Part shown: positions 4,792-22,623 of the stretch, piece after piece
Layout of the letters: the number at the start of each line of letters is the position of its first letter
Numbering within the stretch: the first letter of the stretch is position 1
IMG/VR virus record: IMGVR_UViG_3300046516_001816
Location: 186,001-250,000 of that record
Length of the DNA stretch: 64,000 nt
Strand: one strand, 5' to 3'
Program-made: the position numbers and the translations under genes
The notes under the pieces: generated by a model
What the model was told of the DNA's origin: nothing
The model's database searches: none
Seen by the model: only the letters and a program-made list of their open reading frames with translations

Positions 4792-5223
4792 ATGAACAAC
4801 GCATCGGACCTCAAGAAAGAAATGAACATGACCACGGGTATGCTGGTCTTGCTGAACATTATCACGCTCGGCATCTATCCCGTGATCTGGATGTACAAGC
4901 ACGCGAAGGTCGCGAACGCCATCGTGGGCGACCAGCTCTACAGCGACCTGTTCGTCACGGTGCAGGCCGTGCTCGTGGTGCTGAACGTGCTGTGTTTGTT
5001 CACGGGCTACGGCTCGATCTTCGGCTTGATCGCTGGCATCGTCTGGGTGATCTGGGCTTTCAAAGCCAAGAACATTCTCACGACCTACGCGGCCAAGCAA
5101 CTGGGCATCGATTTACGCATGAACAGCGTGTGGACCTTTTTCTTCACGGTGTTCTACGTCCAGTACTGCATCAACGATTTGCCGAATGCCGCTGCGCGAC
5201 AAACGGCTCTGCGCGCTGTCTAA
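4792..5223 (+). CDS. DUF4234-like membrane protein
   Basis: LLNIITLGIYPVIWMYK motif and several hydrophobic helices. Confidence 0.7.
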   Translation: MNNASDLKKEMNMTTGMLVLLNIITLGIYPVIWMYKHAKVANAIVGDQLYSDLFVTVQAVLVVLNVLCLFTGYGSIFGLIAGIVWVIWAFKAKNILTTYAAKQLGIDLRMNSVWTFFFTVFYVQYCINDLPNAAARQTALRAV

Positions 5224-5301
5224 CGACATCCGCCCGAGAGGGAGCGCTCACAAGGCGTTCCTTTTCTTTCTGTGTTTAACTCAGTTTATGGGAGGCAAGT
5301 C

Positions 5302-5757
5302 ATGGCTGATGAAGTCTGTAAAAATAACCGCGGACGTTTCGGATGTCACAACGTGGTCACAGATGGCGGTGTCAATGACTCCGGGTATTGCGAGAACTGC
5401 TACACCCCGGAGACCGCTGAGAAGAATGCAGAGTACGAGCGTTATCTCGTCGAAGGCCACAGTCACACGGAAGCCGCGCTGCTCTCAGGGCTCGAGGAAG
5501 TCCAGCACGTGCAAGTGCTCGGCGGTGAGATCGCCCCGGACAATGTCATCGCAGAAACCGGCACGGAATTCGAAGTGCCCGCGCGTCGATATGGTAGCAC
5601 GCCGATCACCACGCCGGAGCAGGACGCCGCCGAGCTGCGTGATCACAGTGACGACGACGATGACGAAGGCGACGATGAAGAAGCACTCGAAGACGCAGGC
5701 ACCTGCCGGCTGCTCGACGAGATTGAAGAAGAGAACGATAGACCGGAGATTGCCTAA
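5302..5757 (+). CDS. Hypothetical acidic protein with an N-terminal Cys cluster
   Basis: GGAGG RBS; CxxC (CENC) and D/E-rich tail. Confidence 0.7.
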   Translation: MADEVCKNNRGRFGCHNVVTDGGVNDSGYCENCYTPETAEKNAEYERYLVEGHSHTEAALLSGLEEVQHVQVLGGEIAPDNVIAETGTEFEVPARRYGSTPITTPEQDAAELRDHSDDDDDEGDDEEALEDAGTCRLLDEIEEENDRPEIA

Positions 5758-5823
5758 GCTTTCTCTGGCCGTAAACAAACATAATGAGGGACGCAGCTAA
5801 GAACTGACGTCTTATATTGGAAT

Positions 5824-6081
5824 ATGCGTATTCACTCTGCCCATACCAGCCGTTACGTTATGGATGTGTCCGTTGTGGCCGCATCTGGTATTCGGGAGTT
5901 TTACCATGTGTCGGGCTTCGAATTTGAAAGCGAAGCGCTCGACAAACGCGAAGTCATGAAAGAAGGTCAAACGCAGTTTCTCAACAACCTGAAGGCGTGC
6001 GTCTCACGCAATCCGTTCGTGGCCCAGCGTCTGGGTCGACTGCGTTACAAACTGCGCACTTCGCGCATCCGAGCAGCTTAA
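5824..6081 (+). CDS. Hypothetical protein
   Basis: ORF followed by a hairpin terminator. Confidence 0.6.
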   Translation: MRIHSAHTSRYVMDVSVVAASGIREFYHVSGFEFESEALDKREVMKEGQTQFLNNLKACVSRNPFVAQRLGRLRYKLRTSRIRAA

Positions 6082-6145
6082 CCCCGGGACGGCCTTCGGG
6101 CTGTCCCTTTATGCCGTCTTAATAACACTAAACCACGGAGTCATT

Positions 6146-6628
6146 ATGTCGATCAAGAAAGCAGTCGTTTTGGGGGTCGTCGCGTCCGCTGTATTGATGG
6201 GCGTGATGGGTCATGCGTTTGCCCAGGCCAGCAACTACGCCTACAGTCCTCAGACCTTAAATGAGGATGAAACGATGGTGGAGGATCAGCCCAGTTACGA
6301 ATGGTCCCCGCCGCGTCCTCAGCAGCAACCGTATATCCAGCAGTATCGCCCGGTGCAGCCGCCGGTCTATCAACCCCCGGCGCAGTATCGCCCGGACCCC
6401 TATGCATATGCACCGCCCCCTGTCGTCGTGGTCGCCCCGGCGCCTGTGTACGTACCGCCGCCTCCCGGGGCAGTGGTGTACGCACCCGGCGTGCCGCCGG
6501 CGTTGGCCACGGGCTACTGGCCGCGAGGCTATAATCCATATCGGGCGCCCCGCCCCTATGGCGGTCGAACCTATGGTGGCTATGCGCAGCCGTCGGTAGG
6601 GATCACCATTCAAGGGAACTGGCGTTAA
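6146..6628 (+). CDS. Secreted proline-rich protein
   Basis: Signal peptide ending HAFAQ; P/Y/Q-rich body; GITIQGNWR C-terminus. Confidence 0.7.
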   Translation: MSIKKAVVLGVVASAVLMGVMGHAFAQASNYAYSPQTLNEDETMVEDQPSYEWSPPRPQQQPYIQQYRPVQPPVYQPPAQYRPDPYAYAPPPVVVVAPAPVYVPPPPGAVVYAPGVPPALATGYWPRGYNPYRAPRPYGGRTYGGYAQPSVGITIQGNWR

Positions 6629-9617: not shown

Positions 9618-10559
9618 ATGACTTGCATCGTGTGGCACAAAGGTAAGCTGTATGCGGATTCGTATACCGTGAAAGAAAACGAGACCTTCCAGTCGCTCAC
9701 CAAGATTACGCAGTACGTCACGCCCGTGAAGGTGGTCTGCACGCTGCCGGGGTTTGACATCAATGACCGGGTGTTTGCCTGGACGGGCTCGGGTGGCAAT
9801 GCCGCCATGAAGAAGTTTGCCGATTGGCTGGAAATCGAAGGCGCGAACCCGGACGCTCAAGGTCGGTTTGGCGCTATCTTTGATTTCTATACGTTGGTGG
9901 CCGATCAGCAGTTGGTCAACGGCATGGGCAATCTGTTCGAGATCTTCTTTGTGGGCGAACAGTACAACCATAGCTTTCGGTTGGACTACACGAAGGGCTT
10001 TTCGTATCAGCGGCTGGATAAGAACGAGTCGGTCTTCTACGGCTCGGGTCACCAGCTGTGCCTGAACTTCATGAAGGAATGGCAGGATCCGGTGCGTGCC
10101 ATGCTGGAAACCTTCTTTATCGATCCGGCCTCGGGCGGCATGATCGAGATCTGGGGATGGCGCGAACCGAGACCCGAAGATGTCCTGCCGCACTTTCATC
10201 GCGAAGGCATCGTGATGGATATTCCGAAGGAGCATCTGCGGTACTTCTTGGACCATCTGTGCAAGAATAAGCGGAAGCCGATTCCGCCGCACTATATCCG
10301 TAAGGGTGAGGCGGACGTGATGCTCGCACGCGCGGCGAAGCTTAACCTGGAATTGGAAGAGACGATCGCCAAGCAAGCCAGGTTGATTGCACGTCTTCAG
10401 AAACAGTTGGGGATCGTGCCAGCGAAGAAGGTAGTCAAAAAACCGGCTGCCAAGAAAGTCGAAGTCCACGCACTACCTGCGCCGAAGTCCGCAGGCCAAC
10501 CGATAGTTGGGACCAAGCGTGCGTCGCTTAAGCCCAATCACCGTCAACCATCCATCTAA
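9618..10559 (+). CDS. Ntn-hydrolase (HslV/proteasome-beta-like) peptidase candidate with a basic C-terminal tail
   Basis: N-terminal MTCIV..G.LYADS, internal GSG motifs and a DPASGG.I motif typical of phage proteasome-beta-like proteins. Confidence 0.55.
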   Translation: MTCIVWHKGKLYADSYTVKENETFQSLTKITQYVTPVKVVCTLPGFDINDRVFAWTGSGGNAAMKKFADWLEIEGANPDAQGRFGAIFDFYTLVADQQLVNGMGNLFEIFFVGEQYNHSFRLDYTKGFSYQRLDKNESVFYGSGHQLCLNFMKEWQDPVRAMLETFFIDPASGGMIEIWGWREPRPEDVLPHFHREGIVMDIPKEHLRYFLDHLCKNKRKPIPPHYIRKGEADVMLARAAKLNLELEETIAKQARLIARLQKQLGIVPAKKVVKKPAAKKVEVHALPAPKSAGQPIVGTKRASLKPNHRQPSI

Positions 10560-16920: not shown

Positions 16921-16943
16921 CAACTCTAAACCAAGGAAGCACC

Positions 16944-17183: not shown

Positions 17184-17204
17184 CACTGACTGACGGCATA
17201 AACG

Positions 17205-17228
17205 GGGAGAGCTTCGGCTCTCCCTTTT
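17205..17228 (+). terminator. Intrinsic terminator just upstream of the array promoter
   Basis: GGGAGAGC-TTCG-GCTCTCCC followed by TTTT. Confidence 0.85.
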
Positions 17229-17253: not shown

Positions 17254-17261
17254 TATATTAC
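17254..17261 (+). promoter_or_regulatory. phiKZ-type early promoter TATATTAC upstream of the TIGR array
   Basis: Exact match to the phiKZ early promoter consensus, 18 nt upstream of the first repeat. Confidence 0.65.
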
Positions 17262-17278
17262 TACTTTGAAGCTGAGGC

Positions 17279-19378
17279 TTTGAATCATTTTTCATAACTC
17301 ACCCATCAGGAGCAAATGTATCACGAGATCCAGGCTTCCAATATATAAGAGTGTGGCAAATGAAAGCAGTCGCACACCGAACGGAAACGCACCCTGTTGT
17401 TTAGTCACCCAAACCAAACCAGTGTATCAAAGCGATTCATGCACCCAGCTCGCGCAGTGTATCAATGAACTTCAGGCATCCGGGTACGGAAGTGCGTCGA
17501 ATCCATCACGCTCCCATCGTGGATGAGCGCGTCGACAGGGAAAATCCACCCAATGCAAGCTGAGCGCATCAACGATGTAAACTCACCCGATTCAACGTAG
17601 TGAGATAGAGAGACCAACGCCCCCACGAATCGTTAGCGTGTCATAGACGTTGAGTCGCCCAATATGTAGCAGCGTACCATGTGATAATAGTCACCCTTAA
17701 AGGACAAGTGCGTCAATAGCAAAGTGTCCGCCAGTTGAAGTCAACGTATCAAGGACAACCGCCAGTCAACCAGCTGTGAAGAGTGAACTTTCAAGAAGAG
17801 GCGCCCAGAAGGGGTCAGTGTGACAGGGCAGATAAGTCACCCATCGTTTCGAACTGAGTCAAGAACATGTGAGCCTACCGGGTTAACATGCGTACCATGG
17901 GGCGAGCGTCACCCATTTAAGTTCAGTGTGTCATACGGCAAATGTAACCCAAATAGATTTCGTAGTGAAGCAATGGATAGAAGGCACCCAATGTCTACGA
18001 TTGTATCAAAAGACTAGCTCCACCCAAGGTCTTCTAGTGTATCAATCTGGTATTGCCGACCATAAGTGGGCCAGTGCGCCAAAAGACGAAAGTAGTCCAG
18101 CAGGAAGTAAGTGTAACACGAGAGATATGACGTCCATACTCAACAACTGTGTCACGCGTGTCAGTCGTCCAGACAGGTAAAGTGCATCACAGAAACTACT
18201 TCCTCCAGTACGAAGAAGTGGATCAGTCCGTGCGCAGTCACCCATAGAGCATGAGTGTTTCAGAAGGGTTCAATGCAACCGATGTAGTTGAGTGCATCAA
18301 GCCGCATAGCGACACCCAAAGATGATGAGTGTATCAAAAGACCTAATTTTTACCCATAGACTAGGTGTGTATCATTCCGAAGCAGTCACCCAGTGAACAG
18401 TAATGTATCAAGGTAGGACGATGTCGCCCAGCGATTCGAGTGTAGCACGGTAGATGTGTCATCCAGAACAGGTATTTGTATCAAATAGCATAGTCATCCA
18501 GAGTGGACCAGTGGATCAGAACCATTGATTCAACCGAACGACCCAGTGCAGCAAAGGAGTCTAGTCGCACAGTAGTCGCATTGCAGCAACATTGCACAGT
18601 CCCCCATATCGTCCGATTGTATCAAAACTTGTAATGCCTCCAGTAATACTTAGTGTAGCAATCTGCTCCAGTCACCCATTGTGATAGATTGTAGCAAATG
18701 AGGATAGCCACCCTATGTGAGCAATTATATCAGCAATCATAAACCCTCCATAGTTAGCTAGTGGATCAAGGTGTCTATGTCACCCAGATCGACCCAGTGT
18801 AGCAAAGAACGGGAGTCCACCGCAAAACCGATTTGAACCAAAGTTATTACGCGCCCAAAACATGGAAGTGGGTCATGGAGAAACATTTCACCCAGCCCCG
18901 TTGACCGTATCAGTCTGCAAACTTCACCCATTGTAACACAGTGTATCATTGTAGGGTAGTCACCCGGAATCCTAACTGAACCAGAGACAGGAAGCCGCCC
19001 GATTAATAACAGTGTATCAACCTGAACATGTCGCCCAGATTGTCTTAGTGTATCAAAGTACGCACTGCATCCATTGAAATTCAGTGTATCGCAGTTGTAG
19101 AGTCGACCATATCTGGAAAGTGTAGCAAGATGGATTAGCCTTCCAATCCAGGAATGGAATCAAGTGCAACAAGCCACCCGTCGTAAGCTAGTGTATCAAT
19201 CACGCAAATCCACCCAACCAGTATTAGTGTATCAGTGCATTGAATTCCCCCATTGGAGAGAAGTGTATTAAGGTCCGAAAGTCCAGCAAATCGTAATAGT
19301 GCATCAGGGTTTTACAGTCACCCATCGTGCTCATGTGTATCAATCATCATCAGGCACCCAGAGTAGTTCAGTGTCAAC
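17279..19378 (+). repeat. TIGR-like dual-repeat array (~58 units of ~36 nt) encoding putative tigRNA guides
   Basis: Alternating degenerate 9-nt repeats AGTCACCCA and AGTGTATCA separated by ~9-nt unique spacers, e.g. 17403 AGTCACCCA-aaccaaacc-AGTGTATCA-aagcgattc; no credible ORF; abuts a Nop-domain gene. Confidence 0.9.
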
Positions 19379-19407
19379 AAACTAAACCAAACCAAGGAAA
19401 CTGTATC

Positions 19408-20652
19408 ATGACGACGCAACTCACTCCCGCATATAACCCCAACCTGGCTGTGATCCGCACGATGGTGCGCTCGGCCTACGATATGCAGGATCTGCGCATT
19501 CAGATGGGCAACCGTGTGACGGCTAGCTTCAAGGCCAAGCTCGGATTGCGTCAAGACGGCATGAGCGAGAAAGAGCTCGAGAAGCAAGAGAAGGGCATCC
19601 TCGATCAGCTGCGCGTGTCCTATCGTCGTATCACCGACGGCGTCGTGGCCGAACACGGCGAAGACATCAAAGCCGGCAAGCTCCCCACGGAACGCAAGTT
19701 CCAGGGCGACCAGTTGATTAGCCACTACAGCGAACTGCTGCTGGTGGATAACTACATGGCGACGCTCGCCAACGAACAACATCACTTCAAGGATATGGAA
19801 AAGATCCTGAAGAAGATCCCCATCTACACGGAATTCCTTACCGGTATCCGCGGCGTCGGTCCTGCCATGGCCGGCATCATCATTTCCGAAATCGACATTC
19901 ATAAAGCCGAATACCCGTCAAGCCTGTGGAAGCTCGCAGGGCTGGACGTGGTGTATATCGGGAAGTACACCGACGGCGAAGGCAAAGAGAAGACAATCCG
20001 CGGCTGGGACGTCGACTCGTGGTTCAATGACCCGGCCAACGAAGGCAAACAGTATCTGGCTGAAGGCAAGTACCCGGTGACCTACGAGGCCGTCGGCCGC
20101 TCGCGCAAGGACTTCTGTTTGGTGAAGAAGGAGTACATCAATAAAGAAGGGGAAGCCGCGCAACGTGACTCGATTACGTTCAACCCGTTTCTGAAGACGA
20201 AACTGGTGGGCGTGTTGGGCACGTCGTTTCTGCGGGCCGGCATTGCCAATGTCGATGGCAAGAAGTGCGGCGGGGCATCGCGGTTGGAACTCGCGAAGGA
20301 AGAAGGGTTCAATCCGAAGGACTACCCGGAGATGGAAGAGGACCAGGCCGTGATCGTCTATCTGCGTGCGAAGGGTCATGACGTTGTGGTGGAGCCCAGC
20401 AAGTACGCCGTGATGTATGCGGATTACAAGAACCGCCTGAACAACAACCCGAAGCACCGGGACAAAACCGCGCTGCACAAACACAACATGGCCATGCGCT
20501 TTATGGTCAAGCGTTTCTTGGTGGATCTGTACAACGCATGGCGGCGTCTGGAAGGCCTGGTGGTCGCCCCCGAGTACTCGGAAGGTGTGCTGGGTAAGGT
20601 GCACGGTCAAGCGAAGGAAGCCGGCTGGCAGCATCCGCGCTTCTCGCTGTAA
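19408..20652 (+). CDS. tasA: TasA-like Nop-domain RNA-binding protein (IS110/Nop superfamily, no nuclease domain)
   Basis: Coiled coil IRTMVRSAYDMQDLRIQMGNR; FLTGIRGVGPAMAGIIISEI; SSLWKLAGL; NPFLKTKL; C-terminal HKHNMAMRFMVKRFLVDLYNAWRRLEGL; no RuvC or HNH; directly downstream of the array. Confidence 0.85.
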   Translation: MTTQLTPAYNPNLAVIRTMVRSAYDMQDLRIQMGNRVTASFKAKLGLRQDGMSEKELEKQEKGILDQLRVSYRRITDGVVAEHGEDIKAGKLPTERKFQGDQLISHYSELLLVDNYMATLANEQHHFKDMEKILKKIPIYTEFLTGIRGVGPAMAGIIISEIDIHKAEYPSSLWKLAGLDVVYIGKYTDGEGKEKTIRGWDVDSWFNDPANEGKQYLAEGKYPVTYEAVGRSRKDFCLVKKEYINKEGEAAQRDSITFNPFLKTKLVGVLGTSFLRAGIANVDGKKCGGASRLELAKEEGFNPKDYPEMEEDQAVIVYLRAKGHDVVVEPSKYAVMYADYKNRLNNNPKHRDKTALHKHNMAMRFMVKRFLVDLYNAWRRLEGLVVAPEYSEGVLGKVHGQAKEAGWQHPRFSL

Positions 20653-20658
20653 GCGAAT

Positions 20659-20678
20659 GGGGAGCTTCGGCTCCCCTT
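20659..20678 (+). terminator. Terminator hairpin after tasA
   Basis: GGGGAGC-TTCG-GCTCCCC-TT. Confidence 0.7.
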
Positions 20679-20703
20679 AACAAATCAAAACCAAGGAGCG
20701 GTC

Positions 20704-21051: not shown

Positions 21052-21260
21052 GCTACTGGATCCCGCCGGATGAAGACTGGGTTCGGTCAATGGTTGAGAT
21101 CGCGATGATCGGTTATAAGCCACCCGAGATTACCGCCGAGATGATCGGCGCGTATTCAGGCGCGCCGTCGACTGAACCGTGCAATTACAACAACCCCCAT
21201 TGCCTCACCGCAGAACAACTGGGTATAACCAAGGAAACGAATCATGGCACAAGCAATTAA
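21042..21260 (+). CDS. Small hypothetical protein
   Basis: Coupled ORF. Confidence 0.5.
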   Translation: MAMSYWIPPDEDWVRSMVEIAMIGYKPPEITAEMIGAYSGAPSTEPCNYNNPHCLTAEQLGITKETNHGTSN

Positions 21261-21801: not shown

Positions 21802-22623
21802 TTACAGGTCAGAAAGAATCACCCAGAAGTCATCGGCGAGTTCCGGATTCAGCATGTACTGATAGGGCAGCCAGAAGCAGCCCGGGTTCGCGGGATCGCC
21901 CCACTGGTCGCCCCACGAATTCCGCACGAGGAAGCATTGCTTCGCATTGTCGTAACCGACGACGAGTACCGCGTGACCGCCCAGACAGTTTTCATACTGC
22001 GTGGGCATCGGCACGAAACCCGTGCGCGCGACTTCATCCGATTCGAAGGCATCGAAAATCTGGATGCCGACGATGATCGGACGATTGAACACCGCGAGCA
22101 CGTGTTGGAAAGCTTCCAGCGTTTGCGGCACCGCCTGGTACTGCAACGCCTTGTGGTTCAGCCCTTCGGCGTAGGATTCGACCGTAGGCTTGACCTTGAA
22201 GTGTTCCGTGTCGTCGCTGTACGGCCACGTGCTCTCCAACGGTGCACCGAACTTTGCGGCGACTTTGACGACGTCACGGATTTCACCGCCTGCGTCTTGA
22301 TCGACGTCACCTTCGAGGTCACGTTCGTTGTAGTAGAGGAACAGGCGCGACAGTGCTTGCGCGACGTTCGTACCCGTCTGAATGTTTTCTTCGTATTCCA
22401 GTGCACCGGCTGTGGCGTTCGCCGTGCACGAACCGAGCTGTCCCTGGTCTTTCACCGGCGAGCAATGCGCCGTGAGGTTCACCGAAGCCGGGATGGCTGC
22501 CGCGCCGAAGGTCAGATGGCCGTGGTACACATGGTCACGACTGTCGGCGGTTTTCTTTTTACGCTTATAAACGCGCGTGACCACCTTCTTTTGGGGTTCG
22601 GCGTGGTGTGGGGTATGCTGCAT
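21802..22623 (-). CDS. Papain-like C1A cysteine peptidase
   Basis: VKDQGQLGSCTANA (catalytic Cys), GGHAVLVVGYD (His), RNSWG (Asn). Confidence 0.92.
   Translation of the reverse strand: MQHTPHHAEPQKKVVTRVYKRKKKTADSRDHVYHGHLTFGAAAIPASVNLTAHCSPVKDQGQLGSCTANATAGALEYEENIQTGTNVAQALSRLFLYYNERDLEGDVDQDAGGEIRDVVKVAAKFGAPLESTWPYSDDTEHFKVKPTVESYAEGLNHKALQYQAVPQTLEAFQHVLAVFNRPIIVGIQIFDAFESDEVARTGFVPMPTQYENCLGGHAVLVVGYDNAKQCFLVRNSWGDQWGDPANPGCFWLPYQYMLNPELADDFWVILSDL

Follow-up and report, generated by a model that had tools for sequence, protein, structure and literature searches.

A dual-repeat TIGR-TasA locus with two predicted folded insertions in the Nop domain, encoded by a chimallin-bearing jumbo phage

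Introduction

TIGR-Tas systems were first described in 2025, and the closest described relatives of the locus analysed here are the dual-repeat TasA proteins, represented by FpTasA (Faure et al. 2025, PMC12045711) and by the compact TasA of phages. The locus comprises a tasA gene (ATG at 19408, stop ending at 20652, + strand) and its guide array, and lies within a stretch of 64,000 nt (the window, positions 186,001 to 250,000) of the IMG/VR virus record IMGVR_UViG_3300046516_001816. Like these relatives it is phage-encoded, specifies a coiled coil and Nop domain standing alone, retains the conserved Tyr/His loop, and adjoins an array of two 9-nt repeats and 9-nt spacers with a 36-nt period, the dual-repeat layout reported by Faure et al. 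(2025, PMC12045711). Unlike compact dual-repeat TasA, it has two insertions predicted to be folded, as well as additions at the tip of the coiled coil and at the C-terminus, and measures 414 rather than about 290 amino acids (aa). It also differs from the usual dual-repeat TasA in its 58-unit array, TIGR arrays being most often of 5-15 units (Faure et al. 2025, Science; PMC12045711), and in its hosts, which are chimallin-encoding jumbo phages.

Other Tas proteins provide further points of comparison. SpTasH (PDB 9W03/9W04) and TaTasR (PDB 9MTY) likewise use dual-repeat 36-nt guides; unlike them, the present TasA is devoid of an HNH or RuvC domain and has about 100 added Nop residues at the wedge and past helix alpha4. 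In MbTasA, PlTasA and CsTasR (stem-loop TasA or dead TasR) the DNA nuclease is also absent or inactive, and insertions appear to occupy the same topological sites (the wedge, and insertion 1 or hairpin C). DNA binding and transcription repression have been shown experimentally for these proteins, including a repression reporter and electrophoretic mobility shift assays for MbTasA and structures for PlTasA (bioRxiv 10.64898/2026.09.09.750476 and 10.64898/2026.08.11.744272), and TasA is described as acting as a sequence-specific repressor without cleavage (bioRxiv 10.64898/2026.09.09.750476). Their insertions co-vary with longer stem-loop guides, and their Y/H loop is missing. Co-adaptation to such guides is the published reason for Nop insertions (bioRxiv 10.64898/2026.09.09.750476 and 10.64898/2026.08.11.744272), and the same preprint that gives the stem-loop-guide account describes dual-repeat Tas proteins as having a compact Nop core. 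The present TasA, unlike the stem-loop ones, keeps both the Y/H pair and the 36-nt dual-repeat guide. From the IS110/IS621 bridge-RNA recombinases it differs in lacking the DEDD domain and the catalytic serine, and its locus has no transposon ends and encodes an array of many short guides where those recombinases use a single bridge RNA.

Identification of the tasA product

A phmmer search of the predicted protein against the PDB returned SpTasH (E 5.7e-9) and TaTasR (E 2.2e-7). The ten best Foldseek matches of its AlphaFold2 model (predicted local distance difference test, pLDDT, 93.4; predicted template modelling score, pTM, 0.88; 146-sequence alignment A1) were all TasH or TasR (E 1.5e-6, probability 1.00). 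The NCBIfam model NF052498 (TIGR_Tas_endo) matched with E 1.8e-26 and 93.4 bits, just below its curated cut-off of 100 bits because the insertions break the match into two stretches; the model's name ('endonuclease') is ill-suited to a TasA. The pairing of a close fold match to Nop5/Nop56/58 of box C/D small nucleolar ribonucleoproteins with an N-terminal fibrillarin-binding domain was not found in TasA. Fold, sequence and the adjoining TIGR array securely identify the product as a Tas protein of the TasA (solo Nop) type, as had been proposed in an earlier note made from the letters of this DNA.

The length of 414 aa and the start directly at the coiled coil, both given in that note, agree with the open reading frame (ORF) and with homologues, whose alignments begin at TasA residues 2-16 onward. 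An alternative GTG start at 19327 was rejected because its frame would cross the last array units. The diagnostic motifs are located at residues 176-181 (LAGLDV), 259-266 (NPFLKTKL), 274-278 (FLRAG) and 331-337 (SKYAVMY). A small lineage-specific extension of about 10 aa is present at the coiled-coil tip (about aa 88-97), and a disordered C-terminal tail of 12 aa is additional to the compact relatives.

Residues 11-134 were modelled by AlphaFold2 as helices only, with no beta-structure, and no Pfam nuclease match was found on residues 1-140. In structural alignments, TasA residues 6-399 correspond to SpTasH 61-298 and TaTasR 109-303; since these alignments begin downstream of the HNH and RuvC domains of TasH and TasR, TasA is without both. 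The 'P....SG' serine motif of IS110 is absent from the sequence after LAGLDV. The earlier statements that the protein has neither a RuvC/DEDD or HNH N-terminal domain nor the IS110 serine motif are thus supported, and its description as nuclease-less stands with respect to DNA. With respect to RNA it probably does not, as TasA is likely to be the RNase for its own pre-tigRNA, by analogy with SpTasH, whose processing dyad Y289/H296 lies in a loop that aligns with the C-terminal loop of TasA. Residues Y390 and H399 of this loop are each at least 90% conserved across the TasA family. Y390 aligned with Y289, but in the pairwise alignment H399 sits 2 residues past K397, the residue aligned with H296, and it is uncertain whether H399 is the exact equivalent of H296. 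No acidic, His or Cys residue of the inserts is invariant, and no match to nuclease families or folds was obtained with them. Homology and the missing nuclease motif and fold suggest that TasA binds DNA without cleaving it, which fits published TasA experiments.

Two insertions in the Nop domain

The gap between LAGLDV and NPFLKTKL is 77 aa and that between FLRAG and SKYAVMY is 52 aa, near the roughly 80 and 50 aa that the earlier note had assigned to two insertions. An alignment with compact TasA revealed that residues 228-258 ('GRSR...ITF'), forming the wedge hairpin, are conserved in all relatives, so the first insertion proper (insert A) is only about 45 aa long (residues 183-227). The hairpin is followed by helix alpha4 ('NPFLKTKL...'), in which K265 is invariant, and the second insertion (insert B) begins directly past this helix. 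Both inserts are predicted to be ordered alpha/beta modules (pLDDT about 97 in the full-length model), and the same folded inserts recur when residues 172-338 are modelled alone (alignment A2, pLDDT 92.7). The secondary structure of insert A consists of strands at residues 181-188 and 194-197 and a helix at 199-207.

The inserts had also been called charged and apparently extra. Both are net acidic in this TasA (-3 and -4, with +5 in the intervening core), and they are predicted to be folded modules and not flexible linkers. Insert A is net acidic in 36 of 36 clade members, with a mean of -3.5, the intervening core carrying +5 to +6. Within the double-insert clade, the residues R292, A296, G300 and L319 of insert B hardly vary. 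The insert sequences are conserved as protein across the 36 members, down to 32% identity. They are indeed extra, being absent from compact TasA relatives and from the solved TasH and TasR structures, and the alignment that the earlier note had proposed showed that they are not universal in TasA, compact relatives having neither. Among 253 aligned homologues, the segment corresponding to residues 182-258 has a bimodal length distribution (30-50 versus 70-130 aa), as has that corresponding to 279-330 (0-10 versus 40-60 aa). Both segments are long in 139 homologues and both short in 57, while only the first is long in 32 and only the second in 7.

According to the model, insert A would occupy the 'wedge' site and insert B the site named 'insertion 1' by Xu et al. 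and 'hairpin C' in PlTasA. In solved Tas complexes the wedge and post-alpha4 positions are adjacent to the guide, to box D and the displaced strand, and to the junctions at which the DNA is unwound. A fold search with the insert region alone gave a best PDB match with E 0.45, only Tas-like proteins among AlphaFold clusters, and template modelling scores of at most 0.41 in the ESM Atlas. The sole Pfam match on the inserts, to the Tn916 integrase DNA-binding domain, was insignificant (E 0.14).

Insertions are frequent at the wedge site outside the chimallivirus clade as well: expansions of 61-170 aa, unrelated to one another, occur in scattered positions on the tree (for example in L081, L028, P0234 and P0259), and one of them belongs to a complete 73-kb genome without chimallin.

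Guide length and phylogeny of compact and expanded TasA

An array with a 36-nt period lies beside tas in 76 of 80 related viral loci, with compact and expanded TasA alike. Compact proteins (284-300 aa) have segments of 34 and 1-3 aa at the two positions and are without both inserts; in expanded proteins (390-450 aa) the segments are 74-86 and 47-53 aa. The repeat consensus of the expanded clade is that of the locus described here, and one compact example has different repeats. Because compact TasA lacking the inserts uses the same 36-nt arrays, adaptation to longer guides does not account for the inserts, and since the compact relatives manage with these arrays, the inserts are not needed for binding a 36-nt guide. 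The double-insert clade is an exception to the generalisation that dual-repeat Tas proteins have a compact core. On a TasA tree built with the insert columns left out, one side or grade is made up of the canonical double-insert proteins, and the remainder are nested.

One compact TasA of 345 aa, with a short wedge and without the second insert, is the product of ORF034 of Ralstonia phage phiRSL1 (L084, NC_010811.2, 3977-5014), which is annotated as 'transposase'. An unannotated array is located 3' of this ORF (5060-6400, about 1.35 kb, 35-36-nt period).

Association with chimalliviruses

The window belongs to a single viral record of 284,983 bp, rated 100% complete by CheckV. A homologue of chimallin is encoded in it (phiKZ gp54, E 1.8e-29, 26% identity over residues 8-574, in an open frame of 675 aa), and by this sequence criterion the host genome of tasA is a chimallivirus, that is, a nucleus-forming jumbo phage. 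Its DnaB-like helicase is nearest to those of phiKZ-like phages of Burkholderia, Ralstonia and Xanthomonas.

The chimallin of this phage was used as a query against the records that contain the related loci, 11 with double-insert TasA and 18 others. Chimallin was found in 10 of the 11 double-insert records (E 1e-62 to 1e-148, and 2.8e-51 in a deep-branching member), and the record with no match is a 26%-complete fragment. It was found in none of the 18 records with compact or differently elaborated TasA, nine of which are rated 100% complete and which include phiRSL1. Since phiRSL1, with a large genome of 231 kb, has a compact TasA and no chimallin homologue, the link is to chimalliviruses and not to genome size. 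This co-occurrence gives circumstantial support to the idea, raised in the earlier note, that the inserts are related to the phage nucleus; it is silent on whether TasA is imported or excluded.

Between this phage and G001 and G002-G005, TasA identity amounts to 77-78%, while the chimallins share only 33% and 42%; the corresponding values for G007 are 57% for TasA and 44% for chimallin. The helicase identities to G001, G002-G005 and G007 are 46%, 54% and 44%. Based on these two marker genes, the data suggest that the TIGR-tasA locus has been exchanged among divergent chimalliviruses. Comparison of G001 (locus L004) with G000, G002-G005 and G007 gave 77-80% identity for TasA, 31-33% for chimallin and 46% for the helicase, the TasA value being well above what the other two would predict. 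In G027 the DnaB-like helicase match (L205/L206, G027:C1:59943-61801) is interrupted for about 390 nt, and the first of its two pieces contains one TAA; an intron, an intein or a break could account for this.

The TIGR array and its possible targets

The array is missed by Tandem Repeats Finder and was detected by a direct-repeat search and a position-weight chain. Each unit consists of an edge repeat, AGTGTATCA (9 nt), a 9-nt spacer, a loop repeat, AGTCACCCA (9 nt), and a second 9-nt spacer. The array terminates in a shortened copy of AGTGTATCA, which is why this sequence was assigned as the edge repeat. It ends 33 nt 5' of the tasA ATG, on the same strand; the best-conserved units adjoin tasA and the distal ones are degenerate, and no long ORF is present in the approximately 2.1 kb 5' of tasA. 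No further TIGR array or tas gene was found in the genome, which contains one of each. Read on the + strand, the repeats show 'UG...CA/CCA', the published order of box D and box C. The loop repeat ends in CCA and the edge repeat in UCA; positions 3-4 of the edge repeat are UG, and the loop repeat has GUC there. Divergence of the box D and box C motifs is reported to be accompanied by covariation.

The spacers have a G+C content of 43%, versus 57% for the genome, and an AT bias of spacers was also seen in 56 other TIGR loci (mean -7 points relative to their genomes). Nearly all spacers differ among close relatives (77-78% TasA identity), and as these share almost none, the arrays must turn over fast.

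From the published 8-nt 3' overhang and C-5 rule, the target form was derived for the two spacers of a unit, A and B: one strand would carry A and next to it B in reverse complement. No self-target with up to one mismatch was found in the phage's own genome, and matches there at 2-3 mismatches equalled the mismatched-pair controls. Comparison of the array with the 80 related loci, in both directions, gave nothing beyond chance. We know of no protospacer adjacent motif described for Tas. A system of unrelated proteins that is comparable in outline, being borne by mobile elements, directed by RNA to bind but not cleave DNA, and presumed to silence competitors, uses a single long spacer on one strand, where Tas uses two 9-nt spacers on opposite strands. 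The lack of self-targets suggests that the targets of TasA would be external, in the host or in competing mobile elements rather than in its own genome.

Expression signals and neighbouring genes

The coordinates of the features of the locus and its surroundings are given in Table 1. The strong terminator at 17204-17225 ends the upstream operon, so that the array and tasA would make their own transcription unit, and no terminator was found between the two. The promoter-like element in front of the array contains TATATTAC, the published predicted promoter consensus of phiKZ (PMC7058600, Table 2). The exact TATATTAC is not over-represented in the genome as a whole (2 occurrences versus 1.7 expected), whereas the extended motif TATATYAC-N5-TGA occurs non-randomly: its seven sites in the genome (17254-17269 and 62197-62212 of the window; G000:C1 31166, 49726, 69248, 71396 and 127659) all lie on the + strand and frequently follow a T run, and one is located directly 5' of the chimallin ORF. 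This motif may be a promoter of the phage, possibly an early one, and the array and tasA would then be a single unit under a phage-polymerase promoter.

The Shine-Dalgarno-like sequence of tasA is part of an extended ribosome-binding context, AAACCAAGGAAA, found 5' of many genes (16929-16940, 19390-19401, 20678-20697 and 21227-21238 of the window; about 40 sites genome-wide). The 8-mers of this context (TTTCCTTG, CTTGGTTT, TAAACCAA and TCCTTGGT) are among the most over-represented of the genome, at 6-8 times the expectation.

The helix-turn-helix (HTH) gene upstream of the terminator is not kept beside tasA in relatives. The convergent gene for a papain-like cysteine peptidase is the only neighbour in common with the five closest relatives, in which it is 51-64% identical.

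Table 1. Positions of the tasA locus components and of nearby features in the window
Feature	Position	Strand	Basis or remarks
HslV-family peptidase-like gene	9618-10559	+	PHROG 1040, E 6.6e-9
HTH DNA-binding protein gene, 79 aa	16944-17183	+	PHROG 686, E 1.8e-4; last gene before terminator
Intrinsic terminator	17204-17225	+	9-bp G+C-rich stem, TTCG loop, T tail; terminator scan, sequence
Promoter-like element	17254-17269	+	T run, TATATTAC, 5 nt, TGA; 10 nt 5' of first array unit
Dual-repeat TIGR array	17279-19374	+	About 58 units, 36-nt period; direct-repeat search and position-weight chain
Shine-Dalgarno-like AAGGAA	19394-19399	+	8 nt 5' of tasA ATG, within AAACCAAGGAAA context common to other genes
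tasA, TIGR-associated protein, 414 aa	19408-20652	+	Coiled coil and Nop, no DNA-nuclease domain; ORF, homology, AlphaFold2, Foldseek
Coiled-coil dimerisation region, aa 11-134	19438-19809	+	Helices 11-45, 54-83 and 107-134; AlphaFold2 model
Insert A, aa 183-227, about 45 aa	19954-20088	+	Wedge site, between C-terminal domain CTD1 and conserved beta-hairpin
Core between inserts	20089-20235	+	Wedge beta-hairpin aa 228-258, helix alpha4 aa 260-276; alignment, model
Insert B, aa 279-330, about 51 aa	20242-20397	+	Small alpha/beta module directly past alpha4, 'insertion 1'/hairpin C site
C-terminal loop with Y390 and H399	20575-20604	+	Aligns with SpTasH loop bearing Y289/H296 pre-tigRNA processing dyad
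Papain-like cysteine peptidase gene	21802-22623	-	PHROG 16701, E 1.6e-15; convergent to tasA

Proposed mechanism and alternative explanations

The explanation that we consider the best, and on balance probable, is that the locus is a chimallivirus TIGR-TasA system that binds DNA without cutting it, and that its inserts form an accessory surface for interaction or compartment-related functions. The phiKZ-type promoter-like element would drive a single transcript containing the 58 guide units followed by tasA. By analogy with SpTasH, TasA would dimerise via its coiled coil and bind the box C/D-like repeats, and its Tyr/His loop would cut the precursor into 36-nt tigRNAs. As in published TasA work, the two 9-nt spacers of each tigRNA would pair with opposite strands of an 18-bp site, and the bound complex, leaving the DNA uncut, would act as a roadblock to transcription or replication. 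The inserts would be folded accessory modules at the wedge site and directly past alpha4.

Two other readings take the protein to be something different, or the inserts to be an accident. That tasA is a decayed remnant of an IS110-type transposase, next to repeats unrelated to it, might be thought from the 'transposase' labels given both to its family (PHROG 4285) and to the phiRSL1 homologue, and from weak matches to Pfam Transposase_20 and NCBIfam IS110. These matches are far under the cut-offs (PF02371, 14.7 versus 21.3 bits; NF033542, 19.8 versus 140 bits), the DEDD/RuvC domain, the serine motif and any N-terminal beta-structure are missing, arrays adjoin tas in nearly all of the related loci, and about 1,900 homologues are intact and strongly conserved, which rules this origin out for practical purposes. 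No more credible is the proposal that the inserts are read-through of guide units inside the coding sequence and not functional domains. Intragenic tigRNAs have been described at the wedge loop of BlTasA and others, but a position-weight scan of tasA reached a maximum of 2.3, equal to background, against about 30 within the array, and the inserts have the predicted fold and the protein-level conservation reported above; guide units were therefore rejected as their source.

Other alternatives accept the inserts as functional. They could be extra nucleic-acid clamps on the flanking duplex, displaced strands or guide at the unwinding junctions, stabilising R-loops for a stronger or more durable roadblock and having nothing to do with the phage nucleus. 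The accessory hairpins of PlTasA, which are topologically equivalent in position, make contacts with box D and with the backbone at the junction and form a cap over the displaced strand, the insertion of CsTasR in its C-terminal domain wraps the guide stem, Arg292 of insert B is nearly invariant, and wedge insertions of 61-170 aa occur scattered over many TasA lineages outside the chimalliviruses. The acidity of insert A throughout the clade, and of both inserts here next to a core of +5, argues against a clamp, as do a guide length and repeat architecture identical to those of compact TasA, which leave no added RNA to accommodate, and the restriction of the insert pair to chimallin-encoding records. 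We regard clamping as possible but the less probable reading. Recruitment of a trans-acting effector (a nuclease, a helicase, a ParB-like protein or a host factor), making the complex more than a passive roadblock, has a parallel in the wedge-site beta-hairpin insertion of SpTasH, which recruits the protein's own HNH domain; ParB-like genes are operonic with some TasA loci, and an acidic folded surface would suit protein binding. However, the genome has a single tas gene and a single array, neither a nuclease nor a ParB family was detected among the neighbour genes scanned, and the cysteine-peptidase-like gene is shared only with the five closest relatives, so that such an effector seems unlikely, and the recruitment of a partner suggested in the earlier note gains no support. 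Because the acidity of insert A is conserved, the guide is unchanged and the inserts are restricted to chimallin-encoding phages, a chimallivirus-specific surface for protein interaction or compartment-related functions is favoured over an extra clamp, albeit with low confidence. The narrower proposal that the inserts license the TasA-tigRNA complex for entry into the phage nucleus, or keep it out, is doubtful.

Several observations weigh against the favoured explanation. The tree could result from a single gain or a single loss of the inserts, so the link to chimallin may reflect descent, and the correlation by itself cannot show adaptation. The charge of insert B varies (mean +0.6), and its nearly invariant R292 would suit contact with nucleic acid as well. 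The sites of the inserts were mapped by the order of secondary-structure elements and not by residue-level superposition. The TasA proteins characterised by experiment (MbTasA, PlTasA and BlTasA) are distantly related to this one, and their guides are of the stem-loop type. Across the double-insert clade, no gene next to tasA is conserved. No RNA run contains the locus, and only two soil DNA runs do, at 5% of words. Finally, three exact scans of IMG/VR gave 2-6 independent matches each, which is the chance level, and no target was found; the 14 matches of one guide fall into four sequence families, and 18-mers are too unspecific for blind database scans.

Significance

The double-insert lineage, a sizeable one, combines a standard 36-nt dual-repeat guide with two domains predicted to fold, contrary to the published picture of Nop insertions, and it appears to be restricted to phages that enclose their DNA in a nucleus made of protein. 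For tool building, the inserts are dispensable for guide binding, as the compact relatives show, and they may serve as portable interaction modules. The lineage raises a testable question as to the cellular site at which a phage-encoded RNA-guided DNA binder works and the DNA on which it acts. If the inserts did admit the complex to the phage nucleus, this would be the first RNA-guided DNA-binding system adapted to a viral nucleus-like compartment, and its likely use would be the silencing of rival chimalliviruses co-infecting the cell and sharing that compartment.

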